From positions 186,001 to 250,000 of the forward strand of contig NIVC01000317.1 of assembly GCA_002269645.1 (NCBI GenBank): a DNA stretch of 64,000 nucleotides, written 5' to 3'. The notes below the pieces were generated by a model that saw only the letters and a program-made list of their open reading frames with translations, ran no database searches and was not told where the DNA came from. Numbering within the stretch: the stretch's first letter is position 1; every line of letters starts with the position of its first letter. This stretch comes from Macrostomum lignano. Its lineage: Eukaryota. Both the position numbers and the translations under genes were made by a program. Shown here piece after piece: positions 3,549 to 64,000 of this stretch.

Positions 3549-6692
<3,144 letters not shown>

Positions 6693-10527: not shown

Positions 10528-10535
10528 GGTCCTGT

Positions 10536-11117
10536 AGGACCAATGCTACACAGGACCAATGCTACACAGGACCAATGCTACACAGGACCAATGCTACACA
10601 GGACCAATGCTACACAGGACCAATGCTACACAGGACCAATGCTACACAGGACCAATGCTACACAGGACCAATGCTACACAGGACCAATGCTACACAGGAC
10701 CAATGCTACACAGGACCAATGCTACACAGGACCAATGCTACACAGGACCAATGCTACACAGGACCAATGCTACACAGGACCAATGCTACACAGGACCAAT
10801 GCTACACAGGACCAATGCTACACAGGACCAATGCTACACAGGACCAATGCTACACAGGACCAATGCTACACAGGACCAATGCTACACAGGACCAATGCTA
10901 CACAGGACCAATGCTACACAGGACCAATGCTACACAGGACCACTGCTACACAGGACCAATGCTACACAGGACCAATGCTACACAGGACCAATGCTACACA
11001 GGACCAATGCTACACAGGACCAATGCTACACAGGACCAATGCTACACAGGACCAATGCTACACAGGACCAATGCTACACAGGACCAATGCTACACAGGAC
11101 CAATGTTACACAGGACT
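10536..11117. repeat. 16-bp minisatellite (CAGGACCAATGCTACA), nearly homogeneous
   Basis: Directly abuts the G-rich array. Confidence 0.95.
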
Positions 11118-13177
11118 AATTATAAAAAACTGTTGCTCCCCAAATCCTCAAACATGCACACTTATTGCATTCTATAAATGGTCATATTAACTGCTATTTC
11201 CCAGATGGATTGAAAATCTGAAGTCTCGTAGATGGGTATAGGCGCACTGCACTCAAAAGTGACTGAGCAGTCCATCGCGCACAAAACGCCAAACCCTAAC
11301 CTTTCTCAACCCTATTCTTAACCCTACCAACCCCCTCCCCCCCCCCTGGCTCGGGTTTGAATTTTGGGCGAACGAAATGAAGTGAGGCTGCACGCTAGGC
11401 GATGAGATGGGGAAGGCATGGTTGAGCGAGGGGCGTGGCTCGAGTCCCGGGGCTGCTATTCTCTACAAGCCCCGTTTGCACACGCACCGATGCGACTGGA
11501 GGAGGGCTGGGTAAGCGAAGAACAACATTTTTTTCGCGAGTCCCAGCGAGTCTATAAAGGGAGAGAAGGGGGGGAAGACATTTTATTCCGCAATTGGGAG
11601 CTCTGCTCTCCCCCACAGCCCACACTGTTACTTCCTTCAACTCGTCCGCATGCGTGCCTTTTGTCTCAGACCCGCAGCCGCCCCCATCCCGTTCCCCTCT
11701 CTCGCTCTGTGCCGCTCCGCTCGCTACTAATTCTCTGCTGCATTTCTAAAAGCCTGCCTGCACTGCCGTCCGCGACCTCCTGTCCCGCATCAGCGCAGGT
11801 GGGCTTGGGTGGGAGATGAGGCACGGAAAGGAAAGAGGAAAGAGGATGCTGAGGAACAAGCGTGGGGGATGGGAGCAAGGCGGATAGATGATGAAGGGAC
11901 TGCATCGAGAGCCACCTGTGCGATGCCGTGTGTGTCTGTGTGTGAGAGAGAGAGAGAGCTAGCACAGTCTCGGGCACTGTGTCGTCATGGAGATCACGCG
12001 AGGCTTAGAGAGAGCCTGGTCGCTGGGACGCATTTTTCCCAGATGCAACAGCAGAAAATCTTTTCTTTCCTCGTGGGTGGCAGACTATAGGGTGCTTCAG
12101 CAGAAACAGTAGCTTCATAGCTTTTTGTGAGCTTGGAAAAAGTTGCATTCTGCTGACAAGGAAAGCGTTTGTGTTTTTTTTCACTAGAACAGCCCGAATC
12201 CAAACAATTGGACGAGTTTAATGCACATTATAGTTTTGCTGCGCTATGGCAGGATTATAGCAGGATTGTATGTAACTGCACACCTTAAATTTTTGCATGA
12301 GAGCCATTCATCAAAAACAACTAACCAAACTAAAAAATTACTTATAGAAATATGGCGTTGGGAAGGCATACTTGGAAAACTTGGATTTCTAAAATGATTA
12401 TTTTGAAGTCCGAGACTGCGAAAATGCTTGCAAACTCGGGTAACTGTGCATGTACTCCTTATGGTACGAGCAGAATTTATATGTAACATGAATAAGCAGA
12501 CACGAAATGAACAGTGTATTGCAAAAAAATTAAACAATATATTTTGCAATACGAAACAACTTGGATTCTATAAAATATAAGATCTACAGAGAAATTTTTA
12601 GCTGCCGGTCGGAATATTTCAGCAATAACGTTTGCAGAAGAGCCTTGTGAGAAAAAATAAACCCATAAATTTATCTCTTCTGCTTTTAATGCAATTTAAA
12701 GACTAAAGGTTGTCCTTGATTTAGGTTTTTTGAAGTTCATAAACGGTATGTTTTTCTTTAGTTTTTGCAAGCCGGATAAAACAATCCGGACCGACAGTTT
12801 TACGCACGATAAACAAAATTATTTTTAACTGAAAATTACAAACTTAAAACTCAGCAAGCTTTTGCAGCACAGAAATTACAGCGTTTAAAAATTCTGTCCT
12901 CTTTTAATAAAAGTTGTTAATATTTAATATCTTCTGTGATAATGAAACATTTTCACTATTTTAAATTTCGACTCGAAGATCACGAGTTTGGAGTTTCCAT
13001 CTTAATTAACGTTTCAGTCAAGAGTACGCAATTTTTGTTTAACAGGGAAATGAATTTATATACTAGCCAGTTTTCTCATGTTTTGAGTGAATTTTAGCCT
13101 TGTTTAAAAATTCGCGCAATGTATTTGGCTTCCTATAAATTTATTTAAAGAAATTACAAATATTTATCGCAAAGACC

Positions 13178-33413
<20,236 letters not shown>

Positions 33414-35991: not shown

Positions 35992-36421
35992 AGTAGTAGG
36001 AGTTAGCAGAACACGGCCGCAGGAAATTCCGTGGAAATTCCGTCACTGGTTTACGTACTGGAGAGATGGCTCCTAGAGCCCTGATCGCCTAAAACTTACA
36101 AGCCTTCGCTGAGTACCAGGTATGGGGGAAGGATGAGCATTGCAACTACATGTATAGGATTTCATGTAAGCATAAAGCAGCGGTAGGAGCAGAAAACGAG
36201 AAGCGCGTATGAATAAAATAAATAGTGGTGCTGCGCGTGTACTGTGCATGTATATGGCTGTGTCTGACTTTTGATATGGTATAGAAATGCAACTGTTTTT
36301 TAATCATTTATGCATAGTAGAAGATACTAAAATTATAATAGGCTCGTATGCTTTTAAAAATTTGCCAATTCGCAGGTTTTTGTTTGCTTACTCTTTCGGC
36401 CTGGAGCTTCTTTTTTGCAAA
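35992..36421 (+). repeat. Polinton left terminal inverted repeat
   Basis: Reverse complement of 49070-49488; only a few substitutions in the outer ~330 bp and one diverged patch near 36325-36350. Confidence 0.9.
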
Positions 36422-36689: not shown

Positions 36690-39600
36690 CGAGGCCAACT
36701 CCTCCTCTGGAGGAGAAAGGGGAAGAACTCCCATCACCGGAATTCCATTCCCTGAAATCCATCAGCTGAAATTCCATGACTTGAATCCCATCTTCCAAAT
36801 CATCTCCAAATCCTCTGTAAAGCCTTTCAAATACCATATCTTGTTTTCCCTGTTCGCAAAAACTGACTGCCATTGTCCAGACTCAGATTCTTCTGTCTCC
36901 TCTCTTCTCTTTTCTCTCCTCTCACGTCTCTCATCTCTACCACCTTATTTATCTCTTCTCCCTCGTCTTTCGTCTTTCTCTTCTGTCTCCTTTATCCCCT
37001 GTTTTCTCCTCTCTCCTCTCTCCTCTCTTCTCTCCTCTCTCATCTCTCATCCCTCATGCCTCATCTCACTATTTCTTTCTCCTCTACTCTCAGCTCCTCT
37101 CTTCTCTCTCCTCTCATCTCTCCTGTCTCCCTCTGCTATCTCATATATTCCCTCTCATCTCCTCTCTCCTCTTTTCTTCTCTCTCCCTCTTCGTTCCCGC
37201 CTTACTCCCCTCTTCTCTCCCATCTGTCATGTCTAATCTGTCCTCTCTCATCTCTACTCTCTTTTCTATAATCTCTTCTCTCTTCTCTTTTCACTCTTCT
37301 CTTTACTCTCTTTACTGACTGACTGAAGATACCAAATCCATCAAAATCCCTCCGTGAAACAGAAATCCTCTCCGCGAAACAGAAATCCTCTCCGCGAAAC
37401 AGAAATCCTCTCCGTGAAACTGGGCTCCATGGAAATCCTCTGAGTGAAACTGACATCCATCAAAATCGTCTCCGTAAAACAGAAATACATCTAAATTCTC
37501 TCCACGAAAAATAAATCCTCTCCGTGAAACCGAAAACCATCAGAATACTCCGTGAAACTGGACTCAATCGAAATTTTCTCTGTCAAAAAGAACTTAACTT
37601 TCAGAATTCATTGGTTAGGGTTAGGGTTCGAGCTGCACAGAGCTGCGTGTTGAATTAATTGAATCAATTAATTGCGCAAACCATTTCTCAGTCAGACAGT
37701 ATCAGTCTTATTTAAAGTTAAATAAACAGTTGCGCAATCTAAATCAACCCTCCAATACACAGCAGCAGTGAGAAGTTGAACCCTCCCCCAACTTTATCTA
37801 TTACGTCTCGCAAAACTAAGTACAATCTTTGCAGAAAGTTAAAAGTATGAAAATAGTTTTTCAAATGCTGTGCTTTTTCTTTTCATATATAAAGCAAACA
37901 ACTTATATCCCCAAACTCAGCGTTGCAAGATCTTTCCAGCAATATAAGTCTCTCCTCTCAAAGTTTAAAACTCGAGGAACAGTTAGCGTTTGAAATTTAC
38001 TAGAGAAATTTGCTAGAGAAGCTCGCAGTCGCAATTCATTGAATTTCACTGCCAAGCTAATACACAGGGCTGGCTGCCTATGGAGAAAAAAGGCGCCGAT
38101 AATAAAACCAAATGAATTTCGACACAGTCTATCTATTTACACTGTACAACTGCTATGTACACTCAGCCCAAGCCCAACCCCCGTTCTGGGGGAAGCATTA
38201 AATTTAACTCGACCCCCCAACACGCGGGGTTTTATTTGCATTGAACGCAGAACACGCGCACCCACCACCCCTCAATACACAGCGGCCCGCGGGCGGAGGT
38301 TGGGGTGGCTATTTTTACAAACTGGCTGAAGCCCCAGGCAGAGTGACCAAAGAAGGTTATTGGGGGTTAAAAAAGCAGTTTTCTGCTTTTTTAGGGATGT
38401 TAAAATGTGAAAATTAAAAATTAAAATAGCCTAAAGCCTGCTCCGGAAAATTTGCAGTTTTCCCATATAAGTTTCGACGTTGACTTGGCAGAATTGTAGG
38501 AGTTCACTTGCTACATACAGACAGACAGACATACAGACAGACAAACATCGCGTCGGTTTTAGTATTAGGACGAGGCCAACTCCTCCTCTGGAGGAGAAAG
38601 GGGAAGAACTCCCATCACCGGAATTCCATTCCCTGAAATCCATCAGCTTAAATTCCATGACTTGAATCCCATCTTCCAAATCATCTCCAAATCCTCTGTA
38701 AAGCCTTTCAAATACCATATCTTGTTTTCCCTGTTCGCAAAAACTGACTGCCATTGTCCAGACTCAGATTCTTCTGTCTCCTCTCTTCTCTTTTCTCTCC
38801 TCTCACGTCTCTCATCTCTACCACCTTATTTATCTCTTCTCCCTCGTCTTTCGTCTTTCTCTTCTGTCTCCTTTATCCCCTGTTTTCTCCTCTCTCCTCT
38901 CTCCTCTCTTCTCTCCTCTCTCATCTCTCATCCCTCATGCCTCATCTCACTATTTCTTTCTCCTCTACTCTCAGCTCCTCTCTTCTCTCTCCTCTCATCT
39001 CTCCTGTCTCCCTCTGCTATCTCATATATTCCCTCTCATCTCCTCTCTCCTCTTTTCTTCTCTCTCCCTCTTCGTTCCCGCCTTACTCCCCTCTTCTCTC
39101 CCATCTGTCATGTCTAATCTGTCCTCTCTCATCTCTACTCTCTTTTCTATAATCTCTTCTCTCTTCTCTTTTCACTCTTCTCTTTACTCTCTTTACTGAC
39201 TGACTGAAGATACCAAATCCATCAAAATCCCTCCGTGAAACAGAAATCCTCTCCGCGAAACAGAAATCCTCTCCGCGAAACAGAAATCCTCTCCGTGAAA
39301 CTGGGCTCCATGGAAATCCTCTGAGTGAAACTGACATCCATCAAAATCGTCTCCGTAAAACAGAAATACATCTAAATTCTCTCCACGAAAAATAAATCCT
39401 CTCCGTGAAACCGAAAACCATCAGAATACTCCGTGAAACTGGACTCAATCGAAATTTTCTCTGTCAAAAAGAACTTAACTTTCAGAATTCATTGGTTAGG
39501 GTTAGGGTTCGAGCTGCACAGAGCTGCGTGTTGAATTAATTGAATCAATTAATTGCGCAAACCATTTCTCAGTCAGACAGTATCAGTCTTATTTAAAGTT

Positions 39601-42600
39601 AAATAAACAGTTGCGCAATCTAAATCAACCCTCCAATACACAGCAGCAGTGAGAAGTTGAACCCTCCCCCAACTTTATCTATTACGTCTCGCAAAACTAA
39701 GTACAATCTTTGCAGAAAGTTAAAAGTATGAAAATAGTTTTTCAAATGCTGTGCTTTTTCTTTTCATATATAAAGCAAACAACTTATATCCCCAAACTCA
39801 GCGTTGCAAGATCTTTCCAGCAATATAAGTCTCTCCTCTCAAAGTTTAAAACTCGAGGAACAGTTAGCGTTTGAAATTTACCGATTTCCCGACTGCTTGC
39901 TAGAGAAGCTCGCAGTCGCAATTCATTGAATTTCACTGCCAAGCTAATACACAGGGCTGGCTGCCTATGGAGAAAAAAGGCGCCGATAATAAAACCAAAT
40001 GAATTTCGACACAGTCTATCTATTTACACTGTACAACTGCTATGTACACTCAGCCCAAGCCCAACCCCCGTTCTGGGGAAGCATTAAATTTAACTCGACC
40101 CCCCAACACGCGGGGTTTTATTTGCATTGAACGCAGAACACGCGCACCCACCACCCCTCAATACACAGCGGCCCGCGGGCGGAGGTTGGGGTGGCTATTT
40201 TTACAAACTGGCTGAAGCCCCAGGCAGAGTGACCAAAGAAGGTTATTGGGGGTTAAAAAAGCAGTTTTCTGCTTTTTTAGGGATGTTAAAATGTGAAAAT
40301 TAAAAATTAAAATAGCCTAAAGCCTGCTCCGGAAAATTTGCAGTTTTCCCATATAAGTTTCGACGTTGACTTGGCAGAATTGTAGGAGTTCACTTGCTAC
40401 ATACAGACAGACAGACATACAGACAGACAAACATCGCGTCGGTTTTAGTATTAGGACGAGGCCAACTCCTCCTCTGGAGGAGAAAGGGGAAGAACTCCCA
40501 TCACCGGAATTCCATTCCCTGAAATCCATCAGCTGAAATTCCATGACTTGAATCCCATCTTCCAAATCATCTCCAAATCCTCTGTAAAGCCTTTCAAATA
40601 CCATATCTTGTTTTCCCTGTTCGCAAAAACTGACTGCCATTGTCCAGACTCAGATTCTTCTGTCTCCTCTCTTCTCTTTTCTCTCCTCTCACGTCTCTCA
40701 TCTCTACCACCTTATTTATCTCTTCTCCCTCGTCTTTCGTCTTTCTCTTCTGTCTCCTTTATCCCCTGTTTTCTCCTCTCTCCTCTCTCCTCTCTTCTCT
40801 CCTCTCTCATCTCTCATCCCTCATGCCTCATCTCACTATTTCTTTCTCCTCTACTCTCAGCTCCTCTCTTCTCTCTCCTCTCATCTCTCCTGTCTCCCTC
40901 TGCTATCTCATATATTCCCTCTCATCTCCTCTCTCCTCTTTTCTTCTCTCTCCCTCTTCGTTCCCGCCTTACTCCCCTCTTCTCTCCCATCTGTCATGTC
41001 TAATCTGTCCTCTCTCATCTCTACTCTCTTTTCTATAATCTCTTCTCTCTTCTCTTTTCACTCTTCTCTTTACTCTCTTTACTGACTGACTGAAGATACC
41101 AAATCCATCAAAATCCCTCCGTGAAACAGAAATCCTCTCCGCGAAACAGAAATCCTCTCCGCGAAACAGAAATCCTCTCCGTGAAACTGGGCTCCATGGA
41201 AATCCTCTGAGTGAAACTGACATCCATCAAAATCGTCTCCGTAAAACAGAAATACATCTAAATTCTCTCCACGAAAAATAAATCCTCTCCGTGAAACCGA
41301 AAACCATCAGAATACTCCGTGAAACTGGACTCAATCGAAATTTTCTCTGTCAAAAAGAACTTAACTTTCAGAATTCATTGGTTAGGGTTAGGGTTCGAGC
41401 TGCACAGAGCTGCGTGTTGAATTAATTGAATCAATTAATTGCGCAAACCATTTCTCAGTCAGACAGTATCAGTCTTATTTAAAGTTAAATAAACAGTTGC
41501 GCAATCTAAATCAACCCTCCAATACACAGCAGCAGTGAGAAGTTGAACCCTCCCCCAACTTTATCTATTACGTCTCGCAAAACTAAGTACAATCTTTGCA
41601 GAAAGTTAAAAGTATGAAAATAGTTTTTCAAATGCTGTGCTTTTTCTTTTCATATATAAAGCAAACAACTTATATCCCCAAACTCAGCGTTGCAAGATCT
41701 TTCCAGCAATATAAGTCTCTCCTCTCAAAGTTTAAAACTCGAGGAACAGTTAGCGTTTGAAATTTACCGATTTCCCGACTGCTTGCTAGAGAAGCTCGCA
41801 GTCGCAATTCATTGAATTTCACTGCCAAGCTAATACACAGGGCTGGCTGCCTATGGAGAAAAAAGGCGCCGATAATAAAACCAAATGAATTTCGACACAG
41901 TCTATCTATTTACACTGTACAACTGCTATGTACACTCAGCCCAAGCCCAACCCCCGTTCTGGGGGAAGCATTAAATTTAACTCGACCCCCCAACACGCGG
42001 GGGTTTTATTTGCATTGAACGCAGAACACGCGCACCCACCACCCCTCAATACACAGCGGCCCGCGGGCGGAGGTTGGGGTGGCTATTTTTACAAACTGGC
42101 TGAAGCCCCAGGCAGAGTGACCAAAGAAGGTTATTGGGGGTTAAAAAAGCAGTTTTCTGCTTTTTTAGGGATGTTAAAATGTGAAAATTAAAAATTAAAA
42201 TAGCCTAAAGCCTGCTCCGGAAAATTTGCAGTTTTCCCATATAAGTTTCGACGTTGACTTGGCAGAATTGTAGGAGTTCACTTGCTACATACAGACAGAC
42301 AGACATACAGACAGACAAACATCGCGTCGGTTTTAGTATTAGGACGAGGCCAACTCCTCCTCTGGAGGAGAAAGGGGAAGAACTCCCATCACCGGAATTC
42401 CATTCCCTGAAATCCATCAGCTGAAATTCCATGACTTGAATCCCATCTTCCAAATCATCTCCAAATCCTCTGTAAAGCCTTTCAAATACCATATCTTGTT
42501 TTCCCTGTTCGCAAAAACTGACTGCCATTGTCCAGACTCAGATTCTTCTGTCTCCTCTCTTCTCTTTTCTCTCCTCTCACGTCTCTCATCTCTACCACCT

Positions 42601-44231
42601 TATTTATCTCTTCTCCCTCGTCTTTCGTCTTTCTCTTCTGTCTCCTTTATCCCCTGTTTTCTCCTCTCTCCTCTCTCCTCTCTTCTCTCCTCTCTCATCT
42701 CTCATCCCTCATGCCTCATCTCACTATTTCTTTCTCCTCTACTCTCAGCTCCTCTCTTCTCTCTCCTCTCATCTCTCCTGTCTCCCTCTGCTATCTCATA
42801 TATTCCCTCTCATCTCCTCTCTCCTCTTTTCTTCTCTCTCCCTCTTCGTTCCCGCCTTACTCCCCTCTTCTCTCCCATCTGTCATGTCTAATCTGTCCTC
42901 TCTCATCTCTACTCTCTTTTCTATAATCTCTTCTCTCTTCTCTTTTCACTCTTCTCTTTACTCTCTTTACTGACTGACTGAAGATACCAAATCCATCAAA
43001 ATCCCTCCGTGAAACAGAAATCCTCTCCGCGAAACAGAAATCCTCTCCGCGAAACAGAAATCCTCTCCGTGAAACTGGGCTCCATGGAAATCCTCTGAGT
43101 GAAACTGACATCCATCAAAATCGTCTCCGTAAAACAGAAATACATCTAAATTCTCTCCACGAAAAATAAATCCTCTCCGTGAAACCGAAAACCATCAGAA
43201 TACTCCGTGAAACTGGACTCAATCGAAATTTTCTCTGTCAAAAAGAACTTAACTTTCAGAATTCATTGGTTAGGGTTAGGGTTCGAGCTGCACAGAGCTG
43301 CGTGTTGAATTAATTGAATCAATTAATTGCGCAAACCATTTCTCAGTCAGACAGTATCAGTCTTATTTAAAGTTAAATAAACAGTTGCGCAATCTAAATC
43401 AACCCTCCAATACACAGCAGCAGTGAGAAGTTGAACCCTCCCCCAACTTTATCTATTACGTCTCGCAAAACTAAGTACAATCTTTGCAGAAAGTTAAAAG
43501 TATGAAAATAGTTTTTCAAATGCTGTGCTTTTTCTTTTCATATATAAAGCAAACAACTTATATCCCCAAACTCAGCGTTGCAAGATCTTTCCAGCAATAT
43601 AAGTCTCTCCTCTCAAAGTTTAAAACTCGAGGAACAGTTAGCGTTTGAAATTTACCGATTTCCCGACTGCTTGCTAGAGAAGCTCGCAGTCGCAATTCAT
43701 TGAATTTCACTGCCAAGCTAATACACAGGGCTGGCTGCCTATGGAGAAAAAAGGCGCCGATAATAAAACCAAATGAATTTCGACACAGTCTATCTATTTA
43801 CACTGTACAACTGCTATGTACACTCAGCCCAAGCCCAACCCCCGTTCTGGGGAAGCATTAAATTTAACTCGACCCCCCAACACGCGGGGGTTTTATTTGC
43901 ATTGAACGCAGAACACGCGCACCCACCACCCCTCAATACACAGCGGCCCGCGGGCGGAGGTTGGGGTGGCTATTTTTACAAACTGGCTGAAGCCCCAGGC
44001 AGAGTGACCAAAGAAGGTTATTGGGGGTTAAAAAAGCAGTTTTCTGCTTTTTTAGGGATGTTAAAATGTGAAAATTAAAAATTAAAATAGCCTAAAGCCT
44101 GCTCCGGAAAATTTGCAGTTTTCCCATATAAGTTTCGACGTTGACTTGGCAGAATTGTAGGAGTTCACTTGCTACATACAGACAGACAGACATACAGACA
44201 GACAAACATCGCGTCGGTTTTAGTATTAGGA
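36690..44231 (-). mobile_element. Four head-to-tail copies of a ~1.88-kb non-autonomous Helitron-like element
   Basis: Units 36690-38570, 38571-40456, 40457-42344, 42345-44231. On the minus strand each starts TCCTAATACTAAAA with a (TGTC)n tract and ends with hairpin CTCCTCC-AGA-GGAGGAG followed by TTGGCCTCG. Confidence 0.7.
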
Positions 44232-49069: not shown

Positions 49070-49488
49070 TTTGCAAAAAAGAAGCTCCAGGCCGAAAGAG
49101 TAAGCAAACAAAAACCTGCGAATTGGCAATTTTTTAAAAGCAAAAATGATTTTGCTCTTCTACTATGCATAAATGATTAAAAAACAGTTGCATTTCTATA
49201 CCATCTCAAAAGTCAGACACAGCCATATACATGCACAGTATACGCGCAGCACCACTATTTATTTTATTCATATGCGCTTCTCGTTTTCTGCTCCTACCGC
49301 TGCTTTATGCTTACATGAAATCCTATACATGTAGTTGCAATGCTCATCCTTCCCCCATACCTGGTACTCAGCGAAGGCTTGTAAGTTTTAGGCGATCAGG
49401 GCTCTAGGAGCCATCTCTCCAGTACGTAAACCAGTGACGGAATTTCCACGGAATTTCCTGCGGCCGTGTTCTGCTAACTCCTACTACG
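49070..49488 (-). repeat. Polinton right terminal inverted repeat
   Basis: Ends CTCCTACTACG (terminal base G instead of T), followed by the TSD. Confidence 0.9.
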
Positions 49489-53019: not shown

Positions 53020-53501
53020 ATGGAAGACATCCACTTCCTAATCAATTAGCGCAATCTGCCATGCCACGAGCTCGGTAATGTCGATTCTTCTGAATTGAAC
53101 TTCATTTCTGAGTCCTCCACTATCGACAGACATGACGAGTTTGCTTCGTTCCTCAACTTTATTCAAAGTGACCGTTCTGACGAGGAACCGCCTTGTCTAG
53201 ATGAAGAGCAAATGGACATCTCCGAGATTGATCAGATTGAGATTGAAGGTTTGCCAAACAAGACGCGCAAGCAAATGTATTAGCACGGCGAACGGTTTCG
53301 CGATTTCCTCGCGAATGAGAAACTTCGAGAGGCCACAGCTGTACCTACCGAAACGCTTAATCAGTCCTTAAGGTACTATTACTATAAACTCAAGAAGCAA
53401 GATGGAAAGCCTTATTCACCAGCTTCTCTTATCTGCATCAGGGCGGGGATACAGAGGCATCTGCGCATGATTCATAAATTAAAAGTCGATATCATCACTG
53501 A
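53020..53501 (+). pseudogene. Crypton tyrosine recombinase copy C, N-terminal half, truncated by an LTR insertion
   Basis: MEDIHFLIN*...ELGNVDSSELNF...EGLPNKTRKQMY*HGERFRDFL...LRYYYYKLKKQDGKPYSPASLICIRAGIQRHL...DIITD; two nonsense codons. Confidence 0.75.
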
Positions 53502-56500
53502 TGTAGTGATCCGCTAGTTAGTGTTAGGCGTCGCACTATGTCAGCAGTTTCCCTCGCTTTCGCCCTCGCCCTGGGTTGCTGTCTGCCGCAGGTCAGCTTC
53601 CCGCCTCCCTTGTCTGTCTGTTTGCTGCCCTTTTCCCCTTGTTTTGCTTGTTTCATGCGCCTCTGTTCTCAGCCCTCAGCCTCTCTGCTGTGGTTTGTTT
53701 CGGTTTCGTTCCAGTCCCGGTTTCCCCTGTCATGTGAGCAAGTAACATGACAAATCTTGTGTTCTTGGAGTCCTAAAGTGCAGTAAACATGTTTACCGCA
53801 CTCGCTGGTCCTGTTTACGGGGAGAATCACGTGCCTAAGGTCCTTCCCTTCTCTAAGGAGAGAAGTGACTCATGTTTCTAAAAATAGACACTGAGTCACA
53901 GCCTAGTGCACTCTGCCCGGAGACCCCAAGTGACGTCAGTTCTAAAAATAGAACAAGTCACGAGGTCTTGTGCACATTGGGACAGTGGAGAATCCCGCGC
54001 TATAAATAGGACCCCCTCTCCCTTGTTTCCGTCAAGGAGTTTTCCAAGTTTCTGAGAGTCTAAGTTTCCGAGTCTGAGTCACTCGTTCTTTAAGTGTCTG
54101 TCTGAACTGAACGCCCATTCTGCGTACAACTACCTCTCTGCTATTGGTCTGACTGAGACCCTCTAAAGCCAACCCCGAGCCTACGAGAGGCTAACACAGC
54201 CCTCCCATCCACCAAACAAGCCCGGAAGGTACTGCCGACGAGACGCCCTATACGTTAAGCTGCAAATCTGCACGTTGTGCTGACTTCGTTGTCTTCGTTA
54301 TTTCGTTTCGACGGGAAGCTCACCTCACCGAAGGCCGAGACCTGAAGGACTGGTGGCAGCACTACATACGCTACTAAGAGCTAAGAAGGCTTCCGACGAG
54401 AGAAAAGGTTCGAGACTTAGAGACTCTCTAGGACTCTCTTAGACGGGCCGCTAGATGACGGTGTGTTAAACTGAGAGGCAAGCCTGAGTGTAGTGTGGCG
54501 CTGGCAGACCAGTCAGCTGTTACTTGGTGGTCATGTAGGTAAGGCCCCAGCCACCTCAGGATGGTGAAACTATGCTATGTTGAGGCAGAAGCATGGCCGA
54601 AGCCTAGATGACTGTTCAGTAATGGCGGCTGGATGCCGGGGGGCTCCAGTTCGAAAAATGGCTCCACTACTGGGGAAACCTGGTAGAGGGTGAACATTAC
54701 TGATCAGGATTCCGGGCTAAAGCTTTGCTTCTATTGCGGATGATTGTGAGGATTGTTCTGCCTTCGGATTGGGTGGCACCCCGCACCCGGTTCGGTCTGG
54801 TGGTTCGATTCTCACTGGAGGGATCCTTGCTCCGTAGGTACGCCCTTGGAGTAGGGGGAACTTCGATCGAATTGAAACACGGATCAGCATCGGGCCTGCA
54901 CGCGCTATGGTTGGGTGCGGCTCGAACTTTAACATACTTTCATTTTGTCGGTCTCCGCTCAGGCGGGTCCGGATTTCGATTCGGATGTTGATGATCGCAG
55001 GGCAAAGGCGCGATGGCAGAGCTGGCTCGTCTTGGCGACGCCGGAGTGCTAATCCCTGTCTGACAGTGTTGGTGCCTCTAAGTGGCGAGAGTCGGGCAAC
55101 GGTACGATCGAGTGCGATGTATATCTTAATTATTTATTGTTCCTTATATTTTCTGATTTCATTTTATTAATTTTTTCAACAATAATTTTTAATTTTCGGT
55201 AATTGTTACCTTTATATTTCTCATTATTGTTTTTATGACCTACATCGTATTCGGGCGTACCGGCTGAATCTCACTGTCTAAGCAGCTAGTTCTGGGTTAG
55301 CTCCCCGGTTCTGGCTTTGTGTCATCCACAGGCTCCTAAGACTACTAAGAAAAATTCGAACTCGGCCACTGCCGAGTCGCAGGGTGACACCTGCACCTCC
55401 CCGAAAGGGGGTCAGGGTGCCAGTTGGAGCTGTCCGGATTGTGAGAGAGTGTTTTCGACCAAGACGGGGCTTGGAGTCCACCGCAGGGTTCGGCACCCGA
55501 GTAGCTTTCATCAGCAGAAGTGTGAGGAAGTTGAGAAGCAGAGTAAGAGACGTTGGACAGATGAGGAGAAGCATATCCTAGCTAGAGCTGAGGCAGGGTT
55601 TAGCGGAGCCGAGGCAGGAATTAACGACTTACTAGTAGCAGCAAATATTCTTCCGGGGAGGACTAAGGAGAGTATTAAGGGGGCCAGAAAGGCGGCAGCT
55701 TATAAGCTTTTAGAGAGGAGCGTAGTACCGAGCTTGTGGGTCAGGGAGGCAGTGCTGTAACTAGGGACGTGGAGGAGAGTGCAGCTACAAGGAATAACGT
55801 TGGCAGTGAGAGTAGCAAGGAGAATGAGTCCAAACCGGATTTAACAACAAAACCCCAAAAAACTAATATAAAAAGCAGAAAAAACCCAAAAAAGATGATA
55901 CAGTAGACAGTGCAGGTCCGTCCTCCTCCATGGGGTCCGGGGCTTGCTCTCCAGGGTTGGCAGGTATCCCGGAAGTTGGGTCCGAGTTGAATAAGGCAGA
56001 GGTAGAGGCTCGTAGAGGTATTAATAGGAAAGCTGTTGAGTGGGTTCTTGAGATCGAGCCGGTGAAGAGTTTTGAGAAGCAGTGCAGTGAGATTAGATCA
56101 GCGATCGCAGATGAGAAGTGGGTTGAGTGTAGTGAGCTTGTTGAGGCATGTTTCCTTAGCTATTGTGAGGAGAAGAAGAGCAACGCCAAGAGGCCAGTTA
56201 GAAAGAAGGCTGTCAAGAGAGAGCTTAAGAACAGAGAGAAGCGGAGAAGAGTTTATGGTGAGATGCAGAGAATCTATAGTAAAGATAGAAAGAAAGCAGC
56301 GGCTGCGGTCTTTAGTGGCGCGTGGAGGCTGTGGAGTGAGCCTAGAGAGGAGAATAAGCAGTTCGAAGAACGGAAGATGGAGTATTGGAAGGGAGTTCTG
56401 AGTAGGGAGTCTGACCCGGATGGCCGTCCGGTTAAGCCTCTGTGGGAGCCAGTTGTAGAGATCGAAGAGCCGGTTAGTTTAGCCGAGTGCAAGAAAGCGC

Positions 56501-58927
56501 TGAGAGATCTTAAGCAGACAGCATCGGGGCCAGATGGCGTTAGTTGGAACAGTGTGAAGGGCATGGGTCCAGGTTGGCTTCAGTACCTTTTCAATTCCAT
56601 CTTGGCGTGCGGGTATCCTACAAAATCCTTTAAAAATTTGCGCACAGTGCTGATTCCAAAGACCGAAAAATCTAGCGACCCGGGGGAGTTTAGGCCCTTA
56701 GCGATTGCGAGTGTCTTTGGCAGAGTTTTCCATAGAATTCTAGCTAGCAGGTTGGGAGTCTGGGCGCCGTTAGGAGCGAGTCAGCGAGCCTTTCAGGTTG
56801 GGATCGATGGGGTCTCTATGAACCACCTCATCTTGGAGGCAGCTCTAGCGGCGGCTAGAAGGGGAGATAGTGAGCTCTACCTAGCTTGGTTAGACCTTAG
56901 AAAGGCACTTGACTCGGTGAACCATCAATCTTTGCTTCGAGCAGCTCGTCGTGCAGGATTGCCTGAGTCCACCTTGGGCTACTTGGGTAACCTGTATGAC
57001 GGGGCGGTCACCGAGTTGAATGGGGTTGCTATTAAGATTAGTAGGGGGGTAAAGCAGGGGGATCCTCTATCACCAATTCTCTTCTGCTATCTGATAGATG
57101 AGTTAATTGATAACCTAGATAGCGGTATTGGGTTCCCGTTGGCGGGGCATCGAGTCAACGCGGCAGCCTTTGCCGACGATTTGGCTATCCTGTCTAGGTC
57201 TAAAGCCGGATTGCAAGCACTCTTGGCAAGCTTGGCTGACTCACTTCTTCCCACTGGGCTTGAGGTGAACCCTGCTAAGTGTTCCACGCTTGCTATCGTT
57301 TGGGACGGGAAGAATAAGCGGTGGCTGCATGATGCCACGGGGCAATTTAAGTTTAGGGGTCTACCCTGCCAGCACTTGGTGTTGAAGAGTCGTATAAGTA
57401 TTTAGGATTACAGTATGGTTCGAAGGGCAATTTAAAGACTGGGCTGGAGATGCTTAAGAGTATGCTCAGGGAATTGAAGGAGGCGCCGTTGAAACCGCAG
57501 CAGCGAGTGTTCCTGCTCAGAAGCAATGTTCTACCTAAGATAATGTATTATCTAGTTAACGGACGCGTACACCAGTACACTCTTCGCGAGTGTGACAAGT
57601 GTGTTCGTCGATTCCTTAGGGAGGCTCTCCATCTGCCGCACGACACTCCAGTGTCTGCCTTTCATGCGTGTGCGAAGGATGGAGGCCTCGACATCGACTA
57701 TTTTGAGTCGCTTGTTCCAATGTATAAATGGCAGAAGTTGGTGAGCCTCGAAGAGGTTCCGGACGCATTGGTCCGTGACTTGTCCCAGCTACCTGCCATT
57801 CGCAAGAGGTTTCAACTGAAAGGTGCGCAAACCAATTTTAACGACAGAGCTGAATACCGAGTGTTCTGGAAGAACAAGTTGCTGGATAATCTCGACGGTT
57901 TTGGCTTAGGTGAAGCAGCGGACGTTCCTCAAGTCCACTTTTGGGTGACGGATGGTTCGTCCCCGCTCACAGGTGAAATGTACATCAAATGTCTTAAGAC
58001 TAGGTGGAATATTTGGCCGACTGCAGCTCGTGCGTCCAGAGGTAGGAGGCAGGCTCCTCTTTGTGATGCGGGCTGCAGGCAAATTGAAGGGTTGGGACAT
58101 ATTCTGCAGCAGTGCAACAGGACCTGGGATAAGAGAGGGGCTAGGCATGATAGAATGGTAGAGTTCGTTGGGAGTCAGTTGGAGCGGCTAGGGTTCAGCG
58201 TTCTGAAGGAGAAGTCTTTTGCGACTCCTAGGGGGCATAGACGGCCTGATTTAATCATATTTAATAAGGATAGGGTTTGGATTGCTGACGTTACGATCTG
58301 TGCAGACAGAGGAGCGGGGCATATGGCTCTCGCTAGGGACAATAAAATTTAATACTATTCAGATGAAGGTCTTGCGACCGAGGTCGCGAAGGTGGCGGGC
58401 CCAGGTGCCCAGAGTGTTGTTGGCTTGGTATGGAACTGGAGGGGCTGTTGCGAAAAGAGGACCGATGAATGGCTTAAGAAGATGGGCGTGCCGATTGAGT
58501 CTAGGAGGCTGGCTTCGGTCAGAGTGCTTGAAGGCTCGGTCTGGTGCGCGGAAGTTTTTAGTAAGAGGACTGGGATTAATTTCGCGCAGGTTGGTGGTCG
58601 CAATCGGAGCGAGTAATTGTCGTGTTGGTGGCTCCGGCGTTCGGTAACGTCCGGACCAGCTTCAGGCATCCGCCCGGCAGTCCCAGCTGGTCCCATGTTT
58701 ATGACGCTGCTCTATATAAAGAGTTGGCCGACTTGACCACCTGGACGGGGGGTTGTACCGGTTTTCCAGCGGTTTCCACGCCATAAAACCAGCTAATATT
58801 CTACCCGGATGATGGGCCAGTATAGGCTCGGGCAGTAGCCCAATGCTTCTTCGCGAAACCTTCGGGACAGCACTTCAAAATAAACTTAAGTGCCTAAACC
58901 GGGAAGCGAACAGTGATTTCTACTTCA
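53502..58927 (+). repeat. 5' LTR (~1.03 kb: 53502-54441 plus 58836-58927) split by the R2 insertion
   Basis: TG...CA ends, TATAAATA at 54001, AATAAA at 58879. The internal split points are inferred. Confidence 0.5.
54442..58835 (+). mobile_element. R2-clade non-LTR retrotransposon (ZF-Myb, RT, CCHC, restriction-like endonuclease), disrupted
   Basis: 55317-55760: CPDCERVFSTKTGLGVHRRVRH plus RRWTDEE Myb. 55930-57405: RT (RPLAIAS, QRAF, LDLRKALDSVNH, GVKQGDPLSP, FADDL). Frameshift at ~57365. 57450-58616: CDAGCRQIEGLGHILQQC, RHDRMV, RPDLII, IADVTI, with TAA at 58350. Element ends are inferred. Confidence 0.85.
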
Positions 58928-58928
58928 T

Positions 58929-58946
58929 TGGTGGCAGCGGTAGAAT
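58929..58946 (+). other. Primer-binding site complementary to the tRNA-Leu 3' end
   Basis: TGGTGGCAGCGGTAGAAT, one base after the LTR-terminal CA; the first 13 nt match the recalled reverse complement of the metazoan tRNA-Leu(AAG) 3' end. Confidence 0.75.
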
Positions 58947-59230
58947 CCGACTACGACACACCCAAGCCAACTGCTCTTTCGAGAACGACATCAGCCAGCG
59001 ACTACGACGAGTTCAACATGTTCAACAAGCGAGACGAGAGCCGGTGCAGCAGCCGGCTGGATTAGAACATTAGCAGTTCGAGGCCTGCGGCAGCAGATGC
59101 CCCCGCGGCAGCAGCAGCGATCAACGACCTTGGTCATCAGCCAACGCCGGGGCGAGGTGCGAGAAGCGACGTGTCCGACGACCCTCCAGACGAGCTTCTG
59201 TAAGGCCTGGACAACATCGGCCGGAACATC

Positions 59231-60055
59231 ATGCACCAGGACGCGAGGACCATGATGGCAGCTCCGCAGCAGCAGATGGAGCGGCCCGTGAGTAAACAAG
59301 TTAAGATTGTTAAATTTACTCCAAGACAGGAAATTCATGTCTGGCTTGCCGCGTTCGAGCAGCGTTGCGAGATGGAGCGCATCGTCGACCCGTTCGAGAT
59401 TAAGCAACACCACATCGCGAGTCTTGCTTTGGCTACTGCATATCCTTCCTTGCTTGGTATGAATCTTCCACGTTTCGCCAGCTATGAAGAGGTTAAGCAG
59501 CGTCTGATTGAGCGATTTGCCCGTCATGGTGGTGCTGATGAGTATTGAGAACTGTTGCGATGTCGTCAACAAGATAAGAATGAGTCAGCAGAAGAGTTTT
59601 CTGACTCCCTGAGAACGCTTGGTGATCGTGCGTACCCTCGAATGCACCCTGAAGATCGCGAGAAGGAGATTGCCGATCAATTTCTTGCTGGTATCCGGAC
59701 GACTCCAGACTTGCGTGAACGGCTGTACTGGGTTCGCCCAAATAATCTTCTTGCTGCGATTCGAGAGTTGCGACGACTAGAAGGCGCCAAAGAATTGGCG
59801 CAGCGAACCGCTCAACCCCTGGTTCAGATGTTGGACGGGGAGCAGGACGACGACCTGAAGCCCGACGTCACCACCCAAGCCTTGCAGACCTTAACCGACT
59901 TGATTGAGAAGCAGCAGCGACTGCTTGACCACCTGGTGCAGCGTGACCAACAGCAGACAGCCAGCCCGCCACAGAGCTGTGATCTGCTATGGCTCGGACA
60001 GCCCGGTCACCGCAGTGCACAATGCCAGTTTCGCCAGAACCAGGGAAACGGCTAG
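59231..60055 (+). pseudogene. Gypsy gag (in-frame stop at 59546, frameshifted CCHC knuckle at ~59990)
   Basis: EIHVWLAAFEQRC, YEEVKQRLIERF, QDKNESAEEFSDSLRTL, DQFLAGI; knuckle ICYG(C)GQPGHRSAQC. Confidence 0.75.
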
Positions 60056-60304
60056 CCGGAGAACGACAACGGCACCGCCCTCCGAGAGGTCCAAGCACAG
60101 GCTACTTGGCAGACTCCGAGAGGTCACCAGAAGAGAATGTCGGCTGTGCAGGCGCCCTTGCAGGATTCCCAGTCCGACAGTCGCTCGTCAGTAAGTGACG
60201 CGGAGTGCGGAGGTTTCGTGGACACCTCCCAGAATCAAAAAATCCATGCGCGCGAGGCCGATCCGTACGTCACAGGTCGAGTAGCAAGTTGAGAAGTCCC
60301 TTTC

Positions 60305-61869
60305 TTGCTAGACAGCGGCAGCCGGAAAAACTTCCTTGGTTCGTCAACTTGGGCCGCTATTAGACGCCGTAATCCTCGTTGTACTATATCGCATGCTATT
60401 CCCGATTGCGTAACAATGTATGATGGGACGCAGCTCCCTCTTGCTTGTAAGGTGACCATCCCGGTGAAGTTTGGTGATATCGTCGCGGACACCGAATTCC
60501 TCGTCACGGTCTCCGATTGTGAAAACTTGCTTTGCGTATCGTTTATGCGAGAGCACTGCCAGAACTTGGACTTCGCTCAAGGAATGTTGAAGTTTAACAA
60601 TGGCGCGTGCATCCCCGTTCGCTATTCACGTCGTGAGCTTCAGACCTGCCGAGTGTAAACCCCATGAGAAGTGCACCCTGCCGCCTAGAAGTTCAGCGCT
60701 GCTTGCCGTCAGATTGGACGACGGCCACCCCGAGAATCGAGGATCGCCATCAATTGTCGACTGGTTAAGTCGAGGCTGTATTCCAGCTGCACCGCTCTGG
60801 AAGCAGCGCCTGCTCTGATGACGATGCCTAAAGGTCACGGCTACATTGAGGTCGTCAACACCGCCGACAGCGAGGTGTTCCTGCAAGCCGGTATCCGTGT
60901 TGGTGTTGCGACGCCACTCCGAACTGCCGACCTGATGTACCTGAGTGAGACGCCTGGACCTGAAGTGCGACACCTCCCGAAGAACTCTGAAGAGTCCAGC
61001 ACCGCATGACTAGATGAAGTCGAGATCAACAGCGAACTGTCCAAAGAACAACATTAGAGAGTGCGAGAACTACTAGTTGAATGTCAAGCGGCCTTCTCCA
61101 AGCACCTGCTAGACGACGCTGGCCTGACTCACCTGGTGACCCACGAGATCATCCTGAAGGACCGGACACCAGTTGCGCTACCACCGCGTCGAATCCCGCC
61201 TCATCTGAAGGACAAACTGGACGCCTTGCTTGATGAGATGCTGGCAAAGCACATCATTCGCCCTGCCTACTCGAGCTACAACTCGCCGATGCTCATCGTG
61301 CCCAAGAAAGACAGCAACATCCGACTGGTTCACGACTTCAGAGCTCTCAACGACCGGTGTGTATATCACCCTTATCCCTACCGCATATCCAGGAGACCTT
61401 TGCGAAGCTTCGTGGTGCTCAGTGGTATTCCAGCTTGGACCTTGCTCAAGGATTCTGGCAGATTCCACTGCGCGACTGCGACCAGCACTTGACAGCGTTC
61501 TCAGTGATCGACCGCGGCCAATTCTGCTTTAACTTTCTACCGATGGGTCTCCACGATAGTCCCGGCAACTTTCAGCGTTGCATTATTAAGCTCCTGGACG
61601 GCCTGACGCCAAAGACTGCGCTTAGCTACGTGGACGACATCGTGGTGCACTCAGTGACTTTCGAGGAACAGCTGGACAACTTGCGAACTGTACTCCAGCG
61701 CATCATCGCAGCCAATCTCAAAGTGAAACCGAAAAAGTGTCATTTGCTCCTCAAGGAGCTGCATTATTTAGGTCACGTCGTGACTCCCGACGGCCTGAAG
61801 ACCTGTGAGGACAAGATTGCGCAGATCATTGATTGTCCCGTGCCACAGTCCGTTACTCAACTGAGACGG
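60305..61869 (+). pseudogene. Gypsy pol: aspartic protease and reverse transcriptase with several frameshifts
   Basis: LLDSGS protease; SSYNSPMLIVPKKD, HDFRALN, SSLDLAQGFWQI, LPMGL, SYVDDIVV, LHYLGHVV; homology ends after PQSVTQLRR. Confidence 0.85.
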
Positions 61870-63590
61870 GTCTACGACGTTTGCCTGCGGGACGTTTGCC
61901 AGCCGGACATTTGTAGGCGGCAATTGGTTAAAGAAGTATGCCCTCTCTAGACTTACATGTACTTGCATTTGAAAACTGTGGACATAGCACTAATCTAATT
62001 CCACCTCGCTCCCTACTACCGCTATTAAATATACAGGTTACTAACAAACTACTGTTCAGGCTCATTGAAGTTATTGCTCTTGTCTGCCTAAATAGAAAGG
62101 TAAAAATACAAAATAGGAGTTTCCATCGTCACAGTTGATGTCTATGTACTCGTATGCCATGGAATGGCCCTTCCCATCTCATTGGCCAAACAAGCTAAGT
62201 GTTTACAAGCTAAATGGGAAAAGACTGAGACATCCATAATCGTATAGGCTTAGGTTCGCCTATATATACTTAACCCAAAAGCCTAACTCTGCTTAACGGA
62301 GTTTGGCCATGACAGCGTGAACTTGACAAGCTGCATTGGAATTAATTCACTTACTTTTGGATCTCCCAATGAACTGGGAAATATATAAGCCAGAATTATC
62401 GTTCAGAAGTTCTTTTATTTGCTCAAAACTTGGCTCACTGGACATTCCCATTTAAATTTGCGTGTCTTCATTCGCAGATCAAAAATCAAGCATCTCAAAC
62501 TGGGAGAAGCGATACAAAAGCGTCAGAAGTTAACTTTATAATATTTTCATATTCAAAGAAAATTTTGTTAAACTAGATGTTAGATTGATGAACTGCATAA
62601 TTTGTATAGATTTTGTTTTCGAACTTTTATACATATGAATAAGCGTCAAAATATTGGACTAAAAACCGGTGTAGTGCATGCGCCCTTGTCAGTTGGCAGG
62701 GCGCGTTGCACTTTGGGGCTGGTTGGGGGGGGGTTGGCGGGCGTGGCAGGGTCTGGCCGCCGGCTGGGCTTTGCGCGTGCCCCTCCCCAGCCGTGCCCCT
62801 GCCCCGTGCTCAGGGCTGGTTGGCTGCGGCTGGGCCAGCTTTGGCGCGGGTGCAGCCCCTCCCCCCTAGGCGGGGTTTTGATTGGCGGCCATTCTCTATT
62901 TTTGTTGGGGTAGCTTGCTTGGGTGGGCTTAGCCGGTGGGGCCATCGGCCCCAGGGTTTGGTTATTATTTAATGCGGCTCTGGGCCTTGCTCACGCCCTT
63001 CGCGCTGTTTTCTCTGTTTGCTCTGTTTGTTCTGTTTGTTCTGTTCGTGCTGTTTTGTGTTTTGAATTGGTGTGCTTGGAGAGTACAAGTGCGAGACTAG
63101 ACGGTTAAACAGCAATTCTAGCTATTGAATACGAGAAAAGAATCAGAAGAGCCTTAAGAAGAATCTTGGAAGTTAGAACCTGCACTGTACAACGAGCGAA
63201 TCAATAAACGTAACGGCGATTTGGCCACTGGTAAGCCGCCTGCTGCTTGAGTTCGTTCTTTTCTGGGAGCTTGTTAGGCTGAGTTCTTGCCAGAGCGTCA
63301 TAACGCCGGGAGATCATATAGCTTTTTGTAGTATTGTACCATCTACTCTATATAGTGTGTACAACCTACAGTATTGAAACTAGAAGCACTCGAGAGTGTC
63401 ACCACACCTCAAGTCGCAGCGTGAACTCGGAGTGTCACAACACCAGAGGGATCGAACTATTATCGCAGAGCGTCGTCACGCCTGCTCGTATTCATAAAAG
63501 TACAGACATAGCGTCACTACGCCTGTATATTACGTATAATATATATTGTACTCGGGACTGTGCACCCAAACCGACCCGAGTTACAACTCG
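61870..63590. other. Unassigned insertion(s) interrupting Gypsy pol between RT and RNase H
   Basis: No pol homology; contains a possible non-LTR C-terminal relic (LTGHSHLN near 62435), a GC-rich block and LTR-like sequence. Confidence 0.5.
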
Positions 63591-64000
63591 ACTCTTGAGC
63601 ATCAGGTAGCGTTCGACACTCTAAAGAAGTTGTGTTCGACTGAAGTTCTCGCTCTGCCAGAGTTTAACTCTGATCCTGCTGTGAATTTTTTCCTCGACAA
63701 GGATGCCTCAGATATTTGAATAGGCGCTTGCCTTGGACAACTGCAATCCGACGGCGTCAAACGTCCAATTGCATTCTTTAGCCGTAAACTTCGCGATCCC
63801 GAGAAGCGCTACATGGTCACGAAGAAAGAGCTGCTTGCAATTGTGGACGCTATGCGACATTTCCGTCATTATTTAATTGGCAAGAAGTTTGAAGTTCGAT
63901 CCGATCATAGGGCCTTACTGTGGTTACTGAACCAGACTCAGGCCACGGGTATTTTAGGCCGCTGGATTGAACGCCTAAGCGAGGTCCGCATCCAGCTCAA
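63591..64000 (+). pseudogene. Gypsy RNase H domain
   Basis: EHQVAFDTLKK...DASD*IGACLGQ...RPIAFFSRKL...ELLAIVDAMRHFRHYL...SDHRALLWL...RWIERL; contains a stop and a frameshift. Confidence 0.85.

Follow-up and report, generated by a model that had tools for sequence, protein, structure and literature searches.

A decayed R2 element with 28S-like sequences at both ends lies in a Ty3/Gypsy LTR of Macrostomum lignano

An R2 element within a Ty3/Gypsy LTR

The window analyzed here, a 64-kb stretch of Macrostomum lignano DNA, contains a single-ORF R2 element that is bracketed by 28S-like tags in the expected order and orientation. The R2 interrupts the 5' LTR of a degenerate Ty3/Gypsy element. The features of the R2 and its host are as follows.

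53499 to 54413, + strand: left (U3-R) part of the 5' LTR, starting TGATGTAG, with TATAAATA at 54001-54008
54444 to 55319, + strand: R2 5' UTR, strongly structured (fold z-score of -3.5 for 54420-54720)
55320 to 55757, + strand: N-terminal part of the R2 ORF, with one C2H2 zinc finger (CPDCERVF...HRRVRH) and the Myb-like motif RRWTDEEKHILA
55930 to 57360, + strand: reverse transcriptase (RT) of the R2 ORF, with the FADD motif (Pfam RVT_1, E=5e-27)
57360 to 58617, + strand: C-terminal part of the R2 ORF, with the CCHC motif CDAGCRQIEGLGHILQQC and a restriction-like endonuclease (RPDLII...IADVT...DNKI)
58618 to 58835, + strand: R2 3' UTR, ending ...GGCTCGGGCAG
58853 to 58927, + strand: right (R-U5) end of the 5' LTR, with AATAAA at 58879-58884, ending ...CTACTTCA
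58929 to 58948, + strand: primer-binding-site-like (PBS-like) sequence TGGTGGCAGCGGTAGAATCC, one base past the LTR end
59231 to 64000, + strand: degenerate Gypsy gag (CCHC knuckle), protease (DSG), RT and RNase H, read in three-frame translation

The element belongs to a Macrostomum R2 family of D-type architecture, in which one zinc finger is combined with a Myb motif. That it is an R2, as the original prediction had it, is borne out by its zinc finger/Myb, RT, CCHC and endonuclease and by its homology to R2s in 28S. Homologues whose contigs show 28S junctions give protein matches with E of 1e-149 to 1e-93, and the protein is 31-37% identical over ~85-90% of its length to three relatives in 28S (L001, L004 and L005). 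Its identity to M. lignano R2 gene models is 89-100% depending on the segment, with 98% in the N-terminal part. There the zinc finger is found by Pfam (zf-C2H2, E=1e-4) and the Myb match is weak, and both motifs can be read in the translation. Pfam has no model for the C-terminal part, which was assigned from motifs in the translation and from R2 protein alignments that extend to the C-terminus; the endonuclease, following the RT and CCHC, is of the PD-(D/E)xK type with RPD...D...K motifs. The N-terminal part terminates at a frameshift and a low-complexity stretch (55740-55930), the RT segment is out of frame with both of its neighbors, a further frameshift lies near 57346-57362, and an in-frame stop occupies 58350-58352. 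With at least three frameshifts and one in-frame stop in its ORF, this old copy is dead and inactive.

The extent of the R2 is supported independently of the tags, since M. lignano gene models cover its 5' UTR from 54888 and its 3' UTR up to 58783. Model P0004 aligns to 54888-55121 and picks up again at 55332; the intervening 210-nt segment (55122-55331) is bounded by GT..AG and is AT-rich in its first half. Model P0006 reads through the 3' UTR at 94% identity, and no excess folding energy was found there. The M. lignano models related to this R2 form at least seven clusters, and they place this R2 beside a second R2-like element with no obvious rRNA adjoining, which hints at dispersed copies. 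Self-comparison of the window (blastn with word sizes 11 and 7, and nhmmer) found no second R2 copy, and the 3' and 5' ends of the R2, used as exact patterns in two scans, had 0 matches in metagenome contigs.

The interrupted LTR spans 53499-58927, with the R2 in its R/U5 part, ~90 nt from its 3' end. Its terminal inverted repeat matches at 10 of the first 13 positions (10/17 of those compared). The predicted insertion into a Ty3/Gypsy LTR was recovered from LTR features on both sides, the PBS-like sequence and the gag-PR-RT-RNase H region downstream. The TG...CA ends, the PBS beside the LTR and the order gag(CCHC)-PR-RT-RNase H are those of Ty3/Gypsy, an assignment made from one LTR, with the integrase and 3' LTR beyond the window. 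The Gypsy RT matches Pfam RVT_1 at 61357-61947 (E=5e-26); the coding part is broken at ~61950-63560 and continues past the window edge. The same blastn and nhmmer searches detected no second LTR copy in the window, nor does the window hold a tRNA gene for comparison with the PBS-like sequence. The junction-spanning ORF and the Gypsy gag, searched together as protein, gave no match at E<=1e-5. A 10-nt direct repeat, TGGTGGCAGC (54351-60 and 58929-38), might have marked the target-site duplication of some larger unit, an idea rejected because both the PBS and the terminal inverted repeat point to an LTR that ends at 58927. The segments 54054-68 and 54412-26 form an inverted repeat of just 80% over 15 nt.

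28S-like tags at the R2 ends

The sequences that resemble the 28S target directly abut the R2.

54414 to 54443, + strand: three imperfect tandem units resembling 28S -13 to -1, namely GACTTAGA (54414-21), GACTCTCTAG (54422-31) and GACTCTCTTAGA (54432-43)
58836 to 58852, + strand: downstream tag TAGCCCAATGCTTCTTC, 14/17 against 28S +1 to +17

The upstream tag, GACTCTCTTA at 54432-54441 on the + strand, matches 28S at 10/10 positions and sits in the last unit, GACTCTCTTAGA. Both motifs were read directly where the original prediction had placed them, and its match counts are correct against the canonical target (...GGTAAACGGCGGGAGTAACTATGACTCTCTTAAG upstream, TAGCCAAATGCCTCGTCATC downstream) as checked on the three relatives in 28S. 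The upstream match lengthens to 13/14 when CTAGGACTCTCTTA (54428-54441) is set against 28S -17 to -4. A partial copy had also been described upstream of the R2; it is present (GACTCTCTAGG, 54422-54432, + strand) but belongs to the middle of the three units, to which TRF gives no repeat score. The units are alike in their TAGA/T-AG ending, where 28S has TTAAGG. Judged from this shared ending, they appear to have been copied from the element's own leader, rather than from 28S or the target.

The similarity to 28S is limited to about -17 to +17 and is not significant farther out on either side. Apparent extensions, whether past +17 or upstream of 54422 (where AAAAGG..GAG seems to match the RUM region), did not exceed shuffles. 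The full 30-mer target is absent from the window with up to 3 mismatches. As predicted, there is no other rDNA, with no Rfam rRNA family, or any other, reaching threshold in the 64 kb. This copy is therefore not at TTAAGG/TAGCC of a 28S rRNA gene, a statement about the copy that says nothing of the family as a whole.

Could both motifs be chance matches, unrelated to the R2 target? Either motif singly is not rare, with 0.27 hits expected per 64-kb window for the upstream and 0.13 for the downstream motif. In fact each has a single match in the window, both strands included, and they stand in the correct order and orientation at the two R2 ends, with a joint chance of the order of 1e-8 or less and an upstream match that reaches 13/14. 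We regard coincidence as extremely improbable. For practical purposes a chance origin is excluded, because each tag is unique in the window and abuts an R2 of independently supported extent.

Origin of the 28S-like ends

The identity and decay of the R2, its LTR context, the lack of rDNA, and the extent and non-chance nature of the tags are directly established. We infer that the tags were template-borne and had diverged before insertion. To the reading that the insertion is ectopic and that its tags are termini borne by the template and already diverged, we give about an even chance. The R2 would have been reverse-transcribed into a non-28S site, the R/U5 part of the Ty3/Gypsy 5' LTR, and the short 28S-like ends would have arrived with the RNA template and not from the LTR. 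The 5' leader unit GACTCTCTTAGA may have been imperfectly reiterated during formation of the 5' junction, or may already have been so in the source copy, and the 3' tail on the template would be TAGCCCAATGCTTCTTC. If a 28S tail had been pristine at insertion and decayed along with the copy (2-5% divergence), at least 3 changes in 17 nt would arise with P=0.005-0.055, so the tags had probably diverged already. The range of -17 to +17 is that of known RNA-borne leaders and duplications.

A possible but doubtful alternative is that the LTR natively held a 28S-like site, about GACTCTCT..AGG/TAGCCCAATGCTTC. Either the R2 ribonucleoprotein would have nicked this site, or priming would have been guided by homology between 28S-derived RNA ends and the LTR DNA. 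In that case the flanking similarity would belong wholly or mostly to the LTR, the second or third 5' unit perhaps having been added from an RNA with a leader, and the uninterrupted LTR should read ...GACTCTCT(TA)AGG-TAGCCCAATGCTTCTTC..., with GACTCTCT..AGG joined to TAGCCCAATGC. The 3' junction lies exactly at the equivalent of T+1, reading the site after 54432 gives 3/4 key RASIN positions (T-6, A-3 and T+1), and an imperfect identity of 14/17 is natural for such a site. Tandem target-plus-leader duplications are also a known product of cDNA end joining without a heteroduplex. A non-28S insertion of R2Bm at a target-like site with RUM and RASIN is on record, as far as the account in PMC10499050, citing Xiong 1988, describes it, and it counts against template-borne ends. 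So does the ~2.6-fold enrichment of GAGTC/GACTC words in the LTR, mostly in the opposite orientation, by which the first 5' unit could be LTR sequence.

Set against a native site is the flank itself. The essential R2Bm upstream motif (RUM, A-31WWWGCNNNA-22) has no acceptable fit at -31 to -22 in either register, and T-5 is C. The similarity is strongest where R2Bm tolerates mutation, in the spacer and at +2 to +17. R2Bm recognition rules may not apply to a flatworm R2 that is ~30% identical. By chance, a 0.75-Gb genome should contain ~0.007 native composite sites as good as this one, or 0.0009 at 27/31. A chance mimic in the LTR and a pristine tail decayed after insertion are both poor fits, each at roughly the 1% level. 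The original prediction had offered either a 28S mimic in the LTR or captured flanks on an R2 that would insert non-specifically; the internal evidence leans to ends owned by the template, and the mimic branch is weakened because the upstream motif required by R2Bm is missing from the flank and chance composites are so rare. To these two we add a third variant, in which the template was a read-through 28S co-transcript.

A covariance search for an HDV-like ribozyme had also been proposed. The Rfam search gave no match at the R2 5' end, with a model that does detect the ribozyme of the L003 R2 (E=0.019). A descriptor scan yielded a sole, hand-built candidate of low confidence, and none that is convincing.

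54764 to 54808, + strand: candidate HDV-like ribozyme core, with P2 54764-70/54802-08, P3 54772-75/54784-87 and L3 54776-83

Its P1' (54788-94) pairs with P1 at 54444-50, and shuffle tests gave p ~0.06 for the score and ~0.013 for score plus position. Such a ribozyme would cut at 54443/54444, after the tag, leaving a processed RNA without the leader; this counts against template-borne ends and would make the upstream tag target-derived, as a native LTR site predicts. A first descriptor was too permissive (>10,000 solutions) and was discarded. An 8-bp helix between leader and interior in the MFE fold (54435-42 with 54471-78) has no P3/L3 core before it and was judged to be at chance level, and for the HDV-like wording CCCAGCC.CCTC at 54546-54557 the fold could not be completed.

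It is also conceivable, though improbable, that the tags arose at the DNA level, recombination, repair or gene conversion having brought into the LTR a piece of R2-interrupted rDNA with a few 28S bases per side, or that the arrangement is an assembly chimera. Elsewhere, R2 copies are known that keep short 28S stubs away from intact rDNA; for example, L003 has ~55 nt of 28S-like sequence upstream of its R2 ribozyme and no rRNA gene within 9.7 kb. Here, the stubs are very short, stopping only a few bases from typical RNA-end positions, the flanking halves fit one LTR (TATA, AATAAA, terminal inverted repeat and PBS), and the sequence bears no sign of a misjoin.

A bolder version of the template-borne reading, which we consider unlikely, is that the Macrostomum R2 lineage has internalized diverged copies of both 28S half-sites as its termini and now transposes outside rDNA. 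Such an R2 would be target-independent while carrying both half-sites along, and where copies came to lie side by side or nested, R2 landing sites could be reconstituted in ordinary chromatin.

Comparison with known R2 systems

R2 is a model for site-specific target-primed reverse transcription and is under engineering for gene insertion. Natural off-target events show what really fixes the insertion site. If the tags are template-borne, this copy documents the use, outside rDNA, of an R2 RNA whose ends derive from 28S; if the LTR had them natively, R2 has a secondary landing pad in a multicopy LTR family. In both cases, this is one dead copy of a precedented phenomenon. The tags most likely came along with the element, an oddity of a known sort and not a new mechanism.

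Like the D-type R2s in 28S (R2Bm and the relatives L001, L004 and L005), the Macrostomum element has a single ORF with one C2H2 finger and Myb, a FADD RT, and CCHC plus restriction-like endonuclease, and its termini adjoin sequences matching TTAAGG/TAGCC. Unlike them, the copy is outside 28S, its ORF is broken, and it has ~13-17 nt of imperfect 28S-like sequence per side.

Many R2 lineages have 28S-derived sequence, less than identical to 28S, in the element itself or in its processed co-transcript. At the 5' end it stems from a ribozyme cut inside 28S or from a junction duplication that became part of the element, and at the 3' end it forms a 28S-like tail. Cleavage at -13 or -28 and tandem duplications of 13-28 nt at R2 5' ends, some with 1-3 substitutions, are described (PMC3774820). 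Reduced-identity 28S-like sequence has been reported within R2 3' UTRs (PMC5035012). The short, substituted 28S-derived termini found here resemble the 5' duplications of sow bug, earwig, horseshoe crab and jewel wasp (PMC3774820), the 28S-like 3' UTR of fish R2 (PMC5035012), and L004, an R2 in 28S with a TAGCCAAATGCC duplication at its 5' end. Tandem duplication of a ~13 nt leader is common to such R2s and the Macrostomum copy. However, those elements are still in 28S, whereas the Macrostomum copy is tagged at both ends and hosted by an LTR.

Non-28S R2 lineages are indeed reported from flatworms (PMC5035012), as the original prediction stated. R2NS-1_SMed and R2NS-1_CSi share with our copy a flatworm host and a location outside rDNA, and the Schmidtea family is R2D-type, but their published flanks are without 28S similarity (PMC5035012). 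The off-target R2Bm insertion (Xiong et al. 1988), to the extent that its re-examination in PMC10499050 sets it out, is likewise outside rDNA with target-resembling flanks. According to the same account, RUM and RASIN are both preserved and correctly spaced at that site, with little other similarity; the Macrostomum copy has the opposite pattern.

A decayed R2 element within a Gypsy LTR

Domain order, Pfam and R2 protein matches establish that the element between the two 28S-like motifs is a single-ORF R2, and its surroundings place it within an LTR, both as the original prediction had claimed.

R2 coding regions and downstream priming site (window coordinates, forward strand)
55320-55757, +, N-terminal part of the R2 ORF: one C2H2 finger and a Myb-like motif
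55930-57360, +, reverse transcriptase with FADD motif (Pfam RVT_1, E=5e-27)
57360-58617, +, C-terminal part: CCHC motif and restriction-like endonuclease
58929-48, +, PBS-like TGGTGGCAGCGGTAGAATCC, downstream of R2

In the database search, seven UniRef gene models of Macrostomum lignano match best, with identities of 98% at the N-terminus, 92-100% in the early RT and 89-94% at the C-terminus. These identities assign the window to M. lignano or a very close relative. The next matches, at no more than 37% identity, are ordinary R2 elements, several shown in the 28S site. Since the M. lignano models also extend into both UTRs, covering the 5′ one from position 54888 on and the 3′ one as far as 58783, the element is bounded independently of the motifs. 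By the sequence-based membership tests it is an R2; this copy is not inserted in 28S. The copy is dead because its ORF has at least three frame changes and an in-frame stop at 58350. Its 5′ UTR shows an unusual amount of structure (z=-3.5), and the same kind of folding test found no unusual structure in the 3′ UTR.

One of the gene models, P0004, omits exactly a GT..AG-bounded 210-nt segment of the R2 5′ region (window 55122-55331; joining ...NGAVECD to APKTTKK...), the first half of which is AT-rich. The omitted stretch could be an error of gene prediction, an insertion, or something like an intron that the retroelement has kept. Two others, P0002 and P0003, are chimeras, arranged R2a-R2b(-R2a), of this R2 family and a second, different R2-like element that bears three zinc fingers at its N-terminus. 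Therefore, two R2 families adjoin in the same orientation in the M. lignano assembly.

The R2 lies in the R/U5 part of a ~1-kb 5′ LTR, ~90 nt from the LTR end. We place it there because of the PBS-like site; gag with a CCHC knuckle, DSG protease, RT (Pfam E=5e-26) and RNase H, all degenerate, downstream on the same strand; AATAAA within 58853-58927, which terminates ...CTACTTCA; a TATA box at 54001 in the left part, which begins TGATGTAG at 53499; and the imperfect terminal inverted repeat formed by the start at 53499 and the end at 58927. The partner LTR falls outside the window, within which no second copy of the LTR or R2 was found. Between RT and RNase H, ~1.6 kb of unrelated sequence, in part of low complexity, breaks the Gypsy pol frame (61950-63560). 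An ORF fragment at 53040-53498 stops exactly at the LTR start. It matches the QRICH1 domain weakly (E=8e-5, short of the Pfam cut-off) and is apparently what is left of a gene or domesticated element into which the Gypsy element inserted.

The window also holds satellite-like arrays at 10392-11150, 14828-16600 and 17212-18700 (units of 16 bp, 33 bp and 8/12 bp), a tandem repeat at 36700-43100 with a period of ~1.88 kb, seen from periodic pattern matches, and an inverted pair of ~430 nt, 95% identical and 12.6 kb apart (35993-36421 and 49070-49487).

The 28S-like tags

Re-reading the sequence gave exactly the predicted motif coordinates, 54432-54441 upstream and 58836-58852 downstream, within ...GAGACTTAGAGACTCTCTAGGACTCTCTTAGACGGGCC... 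(54412-54449) and ...GGCTCGGGCAGTAGCCCAATGCTTCTTCGCGAAACC... (58825-58860). We took the canonical target from the actual junctions of three R2 relatives in 28S (upstream GGTAAACGGCGGGAGTAACTATGACTCTCTTAAG, downstream TAGCCAAATGCCTCGTCATCTAATTAG), against which the claimed 10/10 upstream and 14/17 downstream matches hold. The upstream match is in fact longer, 13/14 (CTAGGACTCTCTTA vs 28S -17..-4); further upstream and beyond +17, 28S similarity is not significant. The window is free of rDNA, as predicted, with no Rfam family, rRNA included, at threshold in 64 kb. Each motif is unique in the window on both strands, where 0.27 and 0.13 matches are expected. The tag observation is real and non-random, and coincidence is very improbable.

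The partial copy described upstream does exist, but as one of three imperfect tandem units.

Tandem units at the R2 5′ end (forward strand)
54414-21, +, unit 1, GACTTAGA
54422-31, +, unit 2, GACTCTCTAG
54432-43, +, unit 3, GACTCTCTTAGA, followed by CGGGCCGC

The three units are alike in ending TAGA / T-AG, unlike 28S TTAAGG. A 10-nt direct repeat, TGGTGGCAGC, flanks the tagged R2, with one copy ~70 nt upstream (54351-54360) and the other ~80 nt downstream (58929-58938); the downstream copy is the start of the PBS-like site. A target-site duplication was one reading of this repeat, but it is probably a coincidence.

Origin of the tags

A native 28S mimic in the LTR could have served as the R2 target, though we hold this to be rather unlikely. 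The 3′ junction is the exact T+1 equivalent, which speaks for it, but a composite site this good should occur ~0.007 times per 0.75-Gb genome (~0.0009 for 27/31). To our knowledge, R2Bm is the only well-studied single-finger R2. It requires both an upstream motif whose spacing is fixed, A-31WWWGCNNNA-22, and the RASIN T-6TNANNT+1, while a mutated spacer and mutated +6..+37 are tolerated; a natural off-target insertion at a target-like site is on record, which speaks for a mimic (PMC10499050). By the R2Bm rules, however, the site has no acceptable upstream motif in either register, T-5 is replaced by C, and similarity is concentrated in dispensable positions.

In the suggested search for an HDV-like ribozyme, Rfam gave nothing for the R2 or its 5′ end, with the threshold relaxed to E<=10. 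As a control, the Rfam HDV model detects the textbook ribozyme of L003, an R2 relative outside intact rDNA, at E=0.019. A hand-built descriptor recovers that ribozyme cleanly, together with one pairing with 28S sequence in L004, a relative inserted in 28S. In the window it gave a single P1/P3/L3 solution, a weak candidate.

Candidate ribozyme from the descriptor (forward strand)
54444-50 / 54788-94, +, P1/P1′, 337 nt apart
54764-70/54802-08, +, P2
54772-75/54784-87, +, P3
L3, GCACCCCG

Of the shuffled sequences, 6% reached its score, and 1.3% reached both its score and its position. If real, it would cut just past the tag and so would favor the native mimic; it is too weak to decide between the models.

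Alternatively, a co-transcript might have brought in pristine 28S ends that decayed after insertion. This reading is heavily penalized, since at least three changes in 17 nt at 2-5% divergence, the range implied by the segment identities to the M. lignano models, have P=0.005-0.055. A DNA-level move or assembly artefact is improbable.

We lean towards template-borne ends: the tags would belong to the R2 template and would have diverged from 28S beforehand. We rank this first, at about even confidence, since it avoids both ~1% penalties and accounts for how far the similarity reaches and for the likeness among the units. R2 ribozymes often cleave within 28S (-13, -28, up to -36), which leaves a leader on the RNA; tandem duplications of 13-28 nt occur at R2 5′ ends, and in several lineages 28S duplications that differ by 1-3 substitutions are fixed (PMC3774820). 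L004 has TAGCCAAATGCC at its own 5′ end. There (104-170), following GACTCTCTTGAGG, it repeats 12 nt of the downstream target half.

Comparison with known R2 lineages

A further R2 outside intact rDNA is L003, which lies on an ENA contig of 44 kb. Its ribozyme (P1 GGUUGGG at 5280; features at 5220-5360 and 9680-9751) is preceded by ~55 nt of slightly diverged 28S-like sequence, and the 9.7-kb locus holds no rRNA gene; on its upstream side there is part of another R2, and on its downstream side the ribozyme occurs a second time. In L004, the P1 of the likely ribozyme pairs with 28S sequence ~40 nt upstream of the insertion site. The R2 studied here differs from the published non-specific flatworm families of the R2NS type because their flanks are without 28S similarity, whereas its own are 28S-like. 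Its nearest counterparts are R2 lineages in which the element itself carries 28S-derived ends, and the rare off-target copy of R2Bm.
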